A stretch of DNA of 64,000 bases from Antechinus flavipes (taxonomy: Eukaryota), in assembly GCF_016432865.1 (NCBI RefSeq), contig NC_067404.1, forward strand, positions 85,250,001 through 85,314,000, in the 5' to 3' direction. A model generated the notes under the pieces. That model was not told where the DNA came from and did no database searches. It was given only the letters and a program-made list of their open reading frames with translations. Every line of letters starts with the position of its first letter. Position 1 is the first letter of the stretch. The translations under genes were made by a program, and so were the position numbers. Below are positions 1,207-7,313 of the stretch, piece by piece.

Positions 1207-4200
1207 TCATAGGGAGGAGATTTTGACAGTGTTGTGGAGAAGATAAGAAGGAGCCAGACTGGAGTTCCGGAGGGCCTCCCCACCACTGCCCCCAGAGGGT
1301 CTTCCCGGCCCCTCTCCGTTGGCACTGCTGGGCGAACGTGGCAGGCTCTCATCTGGGGTGTTGGCGGGGGGGGTGGGGATGCTGATGATGGCCGCCACCA
1401 GGTCCTGACTGTCGCAATTCAGAGTCAGGCTGTCCCGAGTCTTGGCGTTGAGGCTGGCCCGGCTGGTGGATGGAAGCAGAAGGACCGGGATTATCCCCCA
1501 ACCCTTCAGGACTGCTGCGGTCCGGGGCTCAGCTGCAAGATCCACAGCCCCTGCGGTGGGCCGCCTCAGGTAAGTGGGTGCAGTCCCTGCACCTCAGATA
1601 CCTCTCCCATAAGTCCTAACTACAATCCTTTTTGGGGTAAATGTCTCGAGTCCCTGAGCCAGGAAAGGCCTCACGGTCCACCAGGATGTGTTTTGCTCTG
1701 AATTCTCTCATCTTAGTGGGAGGGATTGGCTGGGTGGGCAGGGGCCTGGGCCCAGTGGTCCCTGAGCTCTTTTGTGGCTCCGTTTTCATTAAGTCTATAA
1801 AGCCTTGTTTGCCCCAGCAGCCCCTGGGGCCCCCTCCCCCAAGTTTCACTTCCTTAGCCCCAGGGACTAGGGGCCACATTACCTCTGGGGTCCCGGGCTG
1901 TGGTGTCCAGCAAGAGTGTCCAGCTCCTGCATGCTGCCTCGGCTGACGGAGGCCGTGGAGTTGGCCAGACGGATGGCCCGGCGCTGCTTGGTCCGCCGAG
2001 GGCAGCAGGAGGAGATCAGACCGCTAGCCCGGGTGCCACTTCCCATGACGGCTTGGGAAGACACAGAGGTGCTGCGGCTGGTGTGGCCGCCTAGGGAAAC
2101 GACTCCTAATGCCTCGCTGAAGGCGGATTCGTCTGTGAACTCATGAGACTAGAGGGGAGAGGGGAGAAAGAGAGAGGAGGGTCAGCATATGGGAGTGACG
2201 TGGGGGCCGGGAGGACCCAAGGAAGACACAGGGAGGGAGGCCTCCCAGGGGTCCGAGAGCCCGAGAGACTGCACATCGGGAGCTCCGTTCGAGCAGAAGG
2301 AGAAGGCTATGGCTGCCTGAGGTAGCACCAGAGCACTCGGGGGGTTGGGGGGAGACAGAGAGAGCGCCAGGGAAGGGTCTCACCGTGGTCTTCTCCAGAC
2401 AGTGCAGAAGGTGATGATGCTGCTGTTCAAAAGCCGAGCGGTTTCGTGTGCTCAAGGCCGGCCTTTCGGCACCATCTTGGTCCTAAAGTGCCACGGGTAG
2501 AGCATCAGATGGCCACCCTAGCAACAGGCCCTCAGCCTCACCTCCCCCCATTCCCAGCTTTCAGAACCCTCATCTCGCTCAACTGGTGAGGAAGGGCTGC
2601 AGTGCTGGAGAAGTGCCCTCCCCGCCAGGGCAGAGGCTCACCTCCAGGTCCCTGTTGCGCTTGTATTGAAGGAAGGCCGTCGTGGTCCCGCTCTTAGCCA
2701 TTCGGATCCTCGCCAAGCGCACCTTCTGCTGGGCCCGCCGCTTGTCAGCTCGCTGGTTCTGATGGTAGATTCGGCTGAAGTTGGACACGATGACGGGCAC
2801 CGGCAGGGCGATGACCAGCACCCCGCTGAGTGAGCAGATGGAGCCAAAGATCTTTCCTGCAATTGTGCTGGGCACCATGTCCCCGTACCTGCGGGCACAC
2901 ACCCAATGCCAGATTCTGGCTCTCCCTCAGCCTTACTCTGACCGAGGAGGCCACGGAAGGGAACCTCGAGAACCTCTGGCCCATGTGGAAGGAGCACTGA
3001 AGCTCAGCCCTCAGTAAAGACTGCTCAGGGCAGAGCCTCAGAGGCCTGCAGCAGGACTGCCCATTTCTGTCTGTACCCACGGGCAGGCACAGATGAGGGG
3101 GAAGGAGATAGGTGACCCGGGGCCCTCTCTGTTTAACCCTCTCTGGACATCCTTCCCAGGAAGCTCTTGGGATGAGGATAGGAACGGGAAAAGCCATATG
3201 TGATCTCCAGGTGCAACCCAGACATTTTACAGAGAGGGAAACTGAAGCCCTTATGGAGACAAGGCTTCCTCGAGGGCACGTGAGAGGCAACAGAACCAGG
3301 TTTTCAACACCCCCCCCCCCCCCCGGAGCCTCGCTTTCTCTGTCTAATGAGCGCTGTGCAAGATATACTTCCTAACCCTAAGCCGGCTCCCAGCTGCCTC
3401 TGAAGGGCTGGTGAGTCTGGCTAGGGCCGCCAAGCCACTGTGGGGGAACAGCCAGTGGCCCCCAGACTTCTGGATCCACCCCGTTGCTTGGATATCCTCA
3501 GGCCCTTACTGTCTCCTCTACAACCACCCGGAGCAGAAAACCTCAGTGTCAGCAGTGGGCATCCCTCCAAGTGACCCGGGCTAAGTGCTCTTGCCCTCTC
3601 TGTGCCTCAGTCTCCAATTTCCTCTCTACTTCTGGAAGTCCCACTTTGGCCTTGTTACTGTGAGGCTCCCTAAAGAGAAAACTGCGAAGGTAGGGAGGAA
3701 GTGACGCAGAAAACCAGGAAAGCATCAAGCCTGGCATCAAGACAAACTGTTAGAAAGACCTCGAAGACCCAAGCAGGGCAGCGAGTGAGCGCACCCAGCT
3801 CCCGAGGGCATGAAACTCGAGAAGGCTCAGGACACAGAGCAAGTCATACGTTTTTGGACGTGGTCAACGTGGGCATCTGCCTCGTGTGACTATATGTGTG
3901 TGTCACAGAAGCTTTCCTTGCCTTTTCTTAATTGTTCAGGGGGGAGGATGGAGGAGGGGGAAAAACCCAACCCCACTTCTTAGTCGAAAGAGAATAAAAT
4001 TAATCTGAAGGGAAGAAAAAAAAAATCAAGAGAGCCTTGATCTCTTCTTAAGATGCTGGAAGTCCATCGTTTGGCCATTTTGGATTGAGAAGCAGGATGA
4101 CATCGGGATCCCCTTAACTCCCTGTGTGACCCAGAGCAGAGCCCCCACAGCCCCTTTATCCCTGAGAAATGAGGGAGCTGGGCTAAGTGGCTCCTGAGCC

Positions 4201-6362
4201 CCCTTCTGACTCTTTGATTTGGATTGTTGTTGCGATGACAGCAGACTGCCGCCCCTCTTCTTCCCCTCGTCCCCCACCCCCACTGTTCTCCATGCCCCAG
4301 GATGAATCCCTCCTCTCTTATCCTGTAACAAAAAGGGGACTGGGCCCTAAGAACATCTCAAAATCCCTTTCGGGTCTGGGGACTCGACAAATCAAACGTC
4401 TTACCCACCATCACTCCCATGGAGAAATAGCCCTCAGACTCCAGAACCCCTACCCCAAATCCAGAACCTCGACATACTGGGTGATTCCAGCCTCGATTTT
4501 TCTTCCCTGGCCTCCATCCTTCTGACAAAAAGAGACACAATGGGATATCGGATATAACACGTTGGCCTCGGAGTCGGGAGACGTGGGTTCCAATTGGCCA
4601 AGCCCCTCGGCCTCTCCGAGCCCCACTCTGTGACATGGGAACGCTAATCACACTTATCGCTGTCAGTGGTGTCATCCTTTGGGTCGAGTCACTTACCCGA
4701 GAGTGGTCATAGTAACGATAGTGTACCAGAAGGCAGCCGGGATGCTGGTAAAGTTGGTCTTGCTGGTGCCCTTCTCAGCATAGAACATGACAGTGGCGAA
4801 GATGATGATGGCCATGGTGAGAGAGAAGAGGAGAAAGCCCAGTTCAGAAGCGCAGCTCTTGAGCGTGTAGCCCAGAATCCGAAGGCCCTGTGAGTGTCTA
4901 GAGAACTTGAAGATCCGGAACACTCGGAAGACACGCAAGGTCACGAAAGCCCCAGACACGTCGTCGTTCTTGGGCATGAAGAGCCCGATGTAATATGGCA
5001 AGATGGCCACGGCATCGATGAGACTCATGACGCTGCGGAGAAAGCGGCCCCGACTAGGGGCTGCGAACAGCCGCAGGAGGTACTCCCCCGTGAAGATGAG
5101 CACACAGGCCGTATCCATGCAGAAGAAGGCCAGGGGGAAGCGATCTCCACAGGGTTCTTCCCGCCAACCAGGACGGCCACCAGCTCCACCGCTTCCACCC
5201 CGACAAGGGATGGTCTCCACCACGTTGGCGATGACAGAGACCGCGATGAAGAAGCCTGTCACGTAGTAGAACACCAGCGCCATGGTGCTCGTGTGGGGGT
5301 TCTCGAAGGCTCTCCACAAGCGCTGGCGAAAGGGGCTGCCGGGAGGCAGGGCCCAGTCGGCCCCGGCCCCTCCGGGCCCCCCCAGCTCGGCTTCCTCATC
5401 CTCAGCCAGGCGTTCGGCGTTCTCTTTCTTGCGGTCTCGGTACTCTTCCAGACAACAGTCACCGATGAGCTCCGGCACGATGCCATAGAAGGCTAACTCC
5501 TCATCGAAAGCCTGAGGGATGGGAAGGGACTAAGAGAAGGGGGGAGGAGGGAAGGGGACAGTGCTCCCCCCTCAATGTGCTCCCTCCCCCATCCCAGCAG
5601 GGAAGAAGATTCCCAATCTCCTCCTTGGCCCCCAGCCATTTTCTCTCCTTGGGGGTTGGGGTGGGCCCTGGCAGCCAGCCAGCCTGGGACTCCCTTAACT
5701 GCCCAGAGGCCGGAGCCTGAGACTGGGAAACCCCGTCTGCCCCGGGAGAGGCTTATTTCTCTGGGATAGAGGTTTGGGGCTCCACCCAGATTCCTTCTCC
5801 CCCCCTCCCCAGCCCAAGAAAATCTTTTGAGCCTTTCCCTGTGAAGCTGCCGGGCCACCCATCTGCTCGCTCTCGGGGAGCCCCAGTTCTTTGTCAGAGT
5901 CCTGTCTGTGTCCCCAGACAGAAAAGGAGAGACCCCCCCCTTTCCCCTCCCCCCCTTAGCTCAACTCCCTCTCTAGAGACAAATGGTGCCCCTCCCCACC
6001 CCCCACCAGGCAGGCCCGAAGCTCACCTGGATGCACTCCTGCCTGGGACAGTGCAGCCGGCCGGTCCGGTAGAAGTTGAGGACGTGCCTGAAGAGGTCGG
6101 GGTCCCGGTCAAAGAAGTACTCCCCCGAGTCTGGGTCGAAGAAGAACTCCTTCTCAGAACTGCCCAGCAGCGTGTCCGGGTAACGGGCCAGCGTGTTCTT
6201 CCACGTCTGGAAGCGGCGCCCGCTGACATTCACCACCAGCACTTCATCACTGCGGGCCTCGCACCCCTGGGGAGCCGCGGGCAGGGGCTGCTGAGCCAGG
6301 GGGAGCCAGCCCACAGCGGCCGCCCTGGCGAAAGGCAGCCAGGTCGCTACCCCAGCTGCCAT
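1207..6362 (-). CDS. KCND1: Voltage-gated K+ channel Kv4.1 (Shal family), 6 coding exons, ~672 aa
   Basis: Exons (minus): 6027-6362, 4697-5511, 2642-2888, 2384-2482, 1883-2148, 1207-1462, all GT-AG and in phase (2019 nt). N-terminus [20 protein letters not shown]1 domain, S4 [19 protein letters not shown], pore TMTTLG|YGDMVP, C-terminus VKISSL. Confidence 0.97.
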
Positions 6363-7120
6363 AGTCCCAGGCCGCCCGGGGCCGCCTCAGGCGGGCATCT
6401 GCCTGAGAGCAGGCGGGCTGCAGCTGCGGGAGAGGAGCAGCCGGGATCCGGGCCCAGGTGGCACAGGCCCAGGAGCCGACCGGCCCGGGAGGAGGACGGG
6501 GAGCGGGGCGGCCAGCGGCGGGCCGCGGGTCGTGACGGGTACGGGGCAGGGAGGGCCAAGGGCAGGGCCGAGGCGGGCGCGGAGGGGGGGCGGCCGAGAG
6601 CCAGGTGGAGCCGGAGAAAGGGCGGCAGCTGTGGGAAGTGAGCACTGGCGGGGGCGGGGGCTCCCCGGGCCGGACGGCCGGGGCTTCGGCTCCGCGGCCC
6701 GGGCCGCCCCAAAGGGCAAGAAGGGATGTTCCCCGGGGGCAAGGACTGCTGGGGGTCCAGGTGGCAGCAGGCGCCGGGACCAGAGCAGAGAGTGAGGCTG
6801 TGGGGCTGGGGCTGGGCTCTGCGCAGGGGAGGAGACTGAGGCCGAGGGGCGGGGCCCCGAGGGGCGGGGCGGCGGCCGGGACCGGGGTCTCCCCGCAAGC
6901 AGGGGAAGGGAGATTCTCCTGGTCCTCGGCCTTCTCCCGGCCCCTCCCCCTGCTTCTCGGCGGGGGCGGGGCCGGGGTGTCGGGGCTCCCCACTGCAGCA
7001 GCGGCTCCAGCTCCTCCATGCTGCGGGACAGCAGAGGGGAGGGGCCCGCCTCTGTTGGGGAGGGCGCCTGGCAGCAGCTGCCGGCCCCCCAGCTTCCATT
7101 TTTTCGGGGGGAGGGAGGAA
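6340..7120 (-). promoter_or_regulatory. CpG island, KCND1 promoter/5' UTR
   Basis: CpG-dense with GGGCGG boxes immediately upstream of the KCND1 ATG at 6362. Confidence 0.75.
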
Positions 7121-7313
7121 ATCCCTAGCTCTCGGTGGGGGGCCCCTCCCAGTCTAGTCCGGGTCCCCGCTGCCCCTCCTCTTCTTTTCGGCTACCTCCC
7201 TCCGGCCCTCCCTCCCTCCTTCCCTCCCTGGGTCCCTAGGGTCCGAGCTCAGCAGCACTTAGCTGGAAGGCCAGATCGATAGGCGGGGGAGGGGGAGGGA
7301 GGCCAGCGGAGCC

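Follow-up and report, generated by a model that had tools for sequence, protein, structure and literature searches.

KCND1, the gene encoding Kv4.1, lies on the minus strand of the 64-kb stretch of Antechinus flavipes DNA that was analysed here (the window), and its first coding exon is split by an interval of 515 bp. We consider it highly probable (about 0.9) that this interval is a real U2-type intron, which was inserted at a CAG|G site of KCND1 on the marsupial stem lineage, was kept in all marsupials examined and is spliced out, and that the ancestral intron 2 of the gene was lost on the same branch. The insertion would have occurred between codons 112 and 113, after the split from the eutherians and before that between the opossum and the Australidelphia, and every marsupial examined would have retained it. 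The timing on the marsupial stem follows from parsimony: the intron is present in all marsupials checked and absent in five outgroups, so one insertion on that stem is the shortest account. Excision of the intron would yield the conserved Kv4.1 protein with no codons added or removed, and the intron would evolve like the other introns of KCND1.

The KCND1 exons of the window are all 100% identical at the protein level to Antechinus flavipes XP_051824464.1 and 96-99% identical to Sminthopsis, and none of the downstream exons is missing or disrupted. A first-pass annotation of this DNA had described a phase-0 interval of 515 bp in the first coding exon, and both direct reading and five other marsupial sequences bear this out. 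The donor CAG|GTGAGC, the acceptor in front of an exonic G and the CAG|G proto-splice context were likewise correctly read. The end of the second exon half (exon 1b) had to be corrected, as it does not follow a full Gly codon: the exon ends at 4697 with GG|GTAAGT, in phase 2, two bases into the last Gly codon. Joined, the two halves read ...ECIQAFDEEL..., as in all outgroups, and translation through the intron meets a stop after 20 codons (open reading frame 5973..6362). The piece encoded by the first half (exon 1a) contains the Pfam domains PF11601 (Shal-type N-terminus) and PF02214 (BTB_2, most of the T1 domain), and the piece encoded by exon 1b corresponds to Ion_trans. In the window as well as in the five other marsupial sequences the intron borders agree with the U2-type consensus context (MAG|GTRAGT ... 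Yn NCAG|G). A YAG at ca. 18-20 nt upstream of the acceptor is retained in all marsupials compared, and this conserved position may be the branch region.

The distribution of the intron was established by searching with the two exon halves separately and by fetching ten genomic loci, onto which the halves were mapped by tblastn. Named KCND1 proteins were gathered from marsupials, echidna, eutherians (primate sequences from Pan and Sapajus were among the matches), reptiles, amphibians and fishes, and full-length comparisons used database proteins, with isoform X1 representing Monodelphis. The first sign of the intron in another marsupial came from the search with exon 1b, which returned a Logan open reading frame running from intron sequence into AFDEEL.... 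At ECIQ|AFDE an intron is found in the Dasyuromorphia (515 bp in the window; 477 bp in the dunnart Sminthopsis crassicaudata), the Peramelemorphia (460 bp in the bilby Macrotis lagotis), the Diprotodontia (451 bp in the wallaby Notamacropus eugenii; 452 bp in a macropod-like Logan contig) and the Didelphimorphia (281 bp in the opossum Monodelphis domestica). These lengths are not constrained to multiples of three. All six introns, from four orders, start with GTGAGC and end with a pyrimidine tract and YAG, and since the same split, donor and YAG acceptor recur in five sequences besides the window, the split is not a chance feature. In nine marsupial species the RefSeq models connect the exon halves at ECIQ|AFDE. 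The UniProt entry G3VJ68 of Sarcophilus harrisii (619 amino acids) reads ...ECIQGAFDEEL, with an extra G, and has an unrelated start; this probably reflects a faulty gene model in the region of the new intron.

None of the five outgroups carries an intron at this site. The two halves abut (0 bp) in the monotreme Tachyglossus aculeatus (echidna), the eutherian Mus musculus, the lizard Hemicordylus capensis and the frog Xenopus laevis, and in the shark Heptranchias perlo the site lies in a continuous genomic open reading frame. The contrast with eutherians on which the first-pass annotation had relied thus holds for mouse KCND1, and the comparison of exon structures that it had suggested gave an intron in opossum and wallaby and none in echidna, lizard, frog and shark. 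Of the two histories that it had offered, a rare lineage-specific gain is supported, and the loss of an ancestral intron in eutherians is rejected on account of the uninterrupted site in all five outgroups. A variant in which the intron was gained on the therian stem or earlier and subsequently lost in eutherians could draw on the fact that mammals lose introns far more often than they gain them (PMC3257199; PMC3652778). Absence from echidna, lizard, frog and shark means that a gain is needed anyway, and such a scenario would add an extra loss and place the gain on the shorter therian stem; we regard it as very improbable.

In the outgroups the uninterrupted site reads ...ATCCAG|GCC... or a synonymous variant, and the protein across the junction is identical in marsupials and outgroups, with no codon gained or lost. 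As the protein is the same across the site, nothing was turned from exon into intron and nothing was duplicated. This bears on two documented vertebrate routes to new introns, namely tandem duplication of an exon segment, as in ATP2A1 (PMC3265369), and intronization of coding sequence (PMC3002245). Intronization is ruled out because residues are neither missing nor duplicated at the junction. For tandem duplication, the ancestral site offers CAG|GCC and no AGGT in all five outgroups, so that the GT of the donor cannot be derived from the ancestral exon and the simple AGGT route is removed; in addition, the intron has no similarity to the flanking exons. Taken together, we consider an origin by either route improbable, if slightly less so than a loss in eutherians.

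That the intron is removed from the pre-mRNA is suggested by the constraint on the exons that flank it. Among marsupials the ratio of nonsynonymous to synonymous substitution rates (dN/dS) is 0.004-0.029 on both exon halves, at synonymous distances (dS) between orders of about 0.55-0.9, and both halves are under strong purifying selection. Such selection on both sides argues that the intron must be spliced, giving a normal, conserved Kv4.1: an unspliced insert of 281-515 bp that carries stop codons would be incompatible with this constraint throughout the marsupial radiation. The same data speak against the explanation that the interval is no intron at all, being either an artefact of assembly or an insert in a gene that is no longer functional. 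Six independent sequences, representing four marsupial orders, contain it, dN/dS is at most 0.03 on both sides and all exons are intact, which leaves this explanation with a negligible probability, the lowest of those considered.

A single origin of the marsupial introns is favoured by the identical site, phase and donor hexamer, together with a collinear block in the opossum intron. Among the Australidelphia, the introns can be aligned well in their 3′ halves (MAFFT) and are linked to each other by blastn. When the core of the opossum intron was compared by local alignment with dinucleotide shuffles as reference, a collinear block was obtained with z 3.7 for the wallaby and 2.8 for the window.

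Several observations weigh against our interpretation. The opossum intron could not be aligned to the other marsupial introns by blastn, and its local match is weak and was found in only two of four comparisons, those with bilby and dunnart being not above chance. Direct inspection of outgroup mammals covered one monotreme and one non-primate eutherian genome (mouse). Among the Logan-derived protein matches there was no spliced marsupial KCND1 transcript; the case for splicing rests on evolution. Finally, no source sequence for the inserted DNA was found in the window or in the fetched loci.

With respect to its own sequence, the new intron behaves as an ordinary KCND1 intron. Its identity to the Sminthopsis counterpart is 84%, compared to 78-90% for the other introns of the gene, and like these it is only partly alignable between orders. 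Special constraint on the new intron was rejected, since its divergence matches that of the other KCND1 introns. A segment of ca. 51 bp is reversed in dasyurids relative to the bilby and macropods (Table 1), apparently through a small inversion in the dasyurid lineage. Variability is highest in the 5′ part of the intron, where Sminthopsis (positions 3337-3400 of the fetched locus) has a run of CTG repeats in place of the G-rich stretch of the window; most of this part is missing from the bilby and opossum introns. An Rfam scan of the intron gave no family at threshold, the miRNA-like matches all being sub-threshold. The possibility of a mirtron or hairpin at the 3′ end was rejected, as the last 114 nt, folded for five species, gave z values of −1.4 to +0.35; the folding of the G-rich/C-rich 3′ end does not surpass that of shuffled sequences. 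Alternative isoforms that use the new intron were also rejected, because the isoform differences in RefSeq entries of Antechinus, Gracilinanus and Monodelphis lie elsewhere.

Table 1. KCND1 features in the window (coordinates are window positions), listed in the direction of transcription.
Feature	Positions	Strand	Description
KCND1 coding exon 1a	6027..6362	-	Met1-Gln112, ends ...PRQECIQ; equals residues 1-112 of XP_051824464.1 (100%)
Marsupial-specific intron	5512..6026	-	515 bp, U2-type GT-AG, phase 0, between codons 112 (Gln) and 113 (Ala)
Donor GTGAGC after exonic CAG	6021..6026	-	Invariant in 6/6 marsupial sequences
Intron segment of ~51 bp	5757..5807		Inverted in dasyurids (window, Sminthopsis) relative to bilby and macropods; reverse-strand blastn matches
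Best-conserved intron block	5613..5655	-	Sole part alignable between opossum and Australian marsupials (MAFFT)
Pyrimidine-rich tract and acceptor CAG	5512..5558	-	Tract of ~45 nt (about 5558..5514), AG at 5513..5512, followed by exonic G
KCND1 coding exon 1b	4697..5511	-	Ala113 (AFDEEL...) to first two bases of Gly384; end of T1, S1-S5, pore helix TTLG
Fused exon, equivalent to exons 2 and 3 of other vertebrates	2642..2888	-	Old junction between 2726 and 2725; ancestral phase-0 intron precisely deleted

Mapping of full proteins onto their loci revealed a second difference in gene structure, which the first-pass annotation had not picked up. Exon 2 (162 nt) and exon 3 (84 nt) are separated by a phase-0 intron of 499 bp in echidna, 97 bp in mouse and 127 bp in the lizard, and they are contiguous in all five marsupials compared (window, Sminthopsis, Macrotis, Notamacropus and Monodelphis), with the exact join CAGCAG^AAG. 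The pattern indicates that the ancestral intron 2 was precisely deleted on the same branch as the gain occurred. With one gain and one loss on the marsupial stem, the number of coding introns in this five-intron gene is unchanged. Intron loss is a rare event in mammals: since the split of mouse and rat, 45 and 86 losses were counted among about 148,000 introns (PMC3652778). By rough extrapolation, the chance of a loss in the five-intron KCND1 on this branch would be ca. 1% or less, a figure to be read with the caution that the coincidence with the gain was noticed post hoc and that loss rates differ strongly between genes.

The coincidence raises the possibility that the intron at ECIQ|AFDE is the old intron 2 at a new place. 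A single event would account for gain and loss if intron 2 had been excised and then inserted by reverse splicing at the CAG|G of a KCND1 transcript from which intron 2 had already been removed while intron 1 was still in place, and if this RNA had been reverse-transcribed and recombined into the gene; the intron would thereby have moved ca. 0.8 kb upstream in the mRNA. In addition to the fact that one small gene underwent both a gain and a precise loss on a single branch, and to the rarity of losses mentioned above, it fits such a relocation that both sites are in phase 0 and follow CAG, and that echidna intron 2 (499 bp) is near the size of the new intron in the Australidelphia (451-515 bp). 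Against it, no similarity could be detected between the new intron and the intron 2 sequences of echidna, mouse and lizard or any other part of the loci. When the loci of echidna, mouse, lizard and frog were searched by nhmmer, with single introns as well as with a profile as query, all hits had E values of at least 0.07 and none was in intron 2. Such a lack of similarity is expected either way because of about 160 million years of neutral change. Between the two sites intron 1 is retained, which means that the template of a relocation would have had to be partly spliced, and the post hoc recognition and uneven loss rates noted above count here as well. The comparison establishes a shared branch for the two changes, not a shared event, and we consider relocation unlikely, although it is a much better candidate than tandem duplication or intronization.

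As for the mechanism of origin, our default guess is a transposon or a captured filler fragment. A transposable element, or filler DNA taken up during repair of a double-strand break, would have carried or created the GT, the pyrimidine tract and the AG, and intron 2 would have been lost independently in a reverse-transcriptase-mediated process. We give this explanation roughly even odds. It agrees with the exactness of the insertion, which left the flanking codons unchanged, and with a donor GT that does not stem from the ancestral CAG|GCC. Moreover, the end of the dasyurid intron, CATCCCTCAG, resembles the exon end CATCCAG in the way of a short flanking repeat; this resemblance is weaker in the bilby, macropods and opossum, and any pyrimidine tract followed by CAG looks similar. 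A further argument against this origin is that blastn of all six introns against the 64-kb window and ca. 150 kb of fetched loci gave no second copy. The same program found no similarity of the introns to the flanking exons, the other KCND1 introns, the rest of the window or the outgroup loci. Rfam showed no tRNA, 7SL or 5S-like head, as expected of a SINE, in the intron. The first-pass statement that no transposable element is recognizable in the intron therefore stands to the extent of these searches, i.e. for the window, the fetched loci and Rfam.

Among known vertebrate cases, the closest parallel is the ATP2A1 intron gained in the ancestor of jawed vertebrates (Hellsten et al. 2011, PMC3265369). 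In both cases an old gene received, at a proto-splice site within a conserved coding exon, one intron that is common to a whole clade and absent in outgroups and paralogues. The ATP2A1 intron arose at an AGGT motif by segmental duplication, whereas the KCND1 site is CAG|GCC, shows no trace of a duplicated exon and received its intron much later, within the mammals. Genome-wide comparisons of mammalian orthologues, as summarized in PMC3257199, found losses and essentially no gains, and most of the gains documented in mammals concern retrogenes or domesticated transposon genes (PMC3257199; PMC3002245). Such gains were described for placentals (Kordis 2011, PMC3257199; Szczesniak et al. 2010, PMC3002245) and are, like the one in KCND1, lineage-specific gains in mammals. 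The placental retrogenes and domesticated genes began intronless, and many of their introns were gained in untranslated regions or by intronization (PMC3257199; PMC3002245). KCND1, in contrast, is an ancient multi-exon gene in which the insertion affected conserved coding sequence. Coding-region insertions for which the source was not identified are also known from the teleost slc26a1/2 genes (PMC12357937) and from MC receptors (PMC3151243), in papers that report a faster turnover of introns for teleosts than for the remaining vertebrates. The marsupial loss of intron 2 is, as an exact deletion of a short intron, what the model of reverse-transcriptase-mediated loss in mammals predicts (PMC3652778). 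Unlike the cases on which that model is based, it goes together with a gain elsewhere in KCND1 on the same branch, and the flanking introns were kept.

In the library of 8.4 million papers that was searched, none combined KCND1 with "intron gain". RefSeq models already contain the intron implicitly, and the novelty lies in recognizing it as a marsupial-specific gain that is paired with a loss. To our knowledge, direct examples of the long-proposed relocation of introns by reverse splicing are scarce.

Some other properties of the locus were noted. Around the start codon and upstream of it (window 6300-7200) the GC content is 0.71-0.79, consistent with a CpG-island promoter. Upstream of KCND1, and in the same orientation in all marsupial loci, lies a gene for a product of 815-859 amino acids, which by its position is probably GRIPAP1. 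Parts of the old intron 1 (2889-4696) are alignable across marsupial orders, with a coverage of 50% for the bilby and 20% for the opossum, which exceeds that of the other introns; this alignability suggests that conserved non-coding elements may be located in it. The Kv4.1 proteins of marsupials, at 669-689 amino acids, exceed those of echidna, mouse, lizard and frog (631-651) by additional residues in the C-terminal cytoplasmic part (window 1210-2888), which in Gracilinanus include a Gly-rich run.

For the Kv4.1 protein the new intron probably changes nothing. Its significance is in the history of the gene: in KCND1, an ion-channel gene of ancient origin, highly conserved coding sequence received a clean and datable insertion that is found in all marsupials checked, missing from five successive outgroups and paired with a precise loss in the same gene. 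The intron is a rare genomic change that supports marsupial monophyly, and it makes KCND1 a concrete locus for testing how introns originate in intron-rich vertebrate genomes. If the relocation were true, the gene would provide a mammalian example of the reverse-splicing mechanism.
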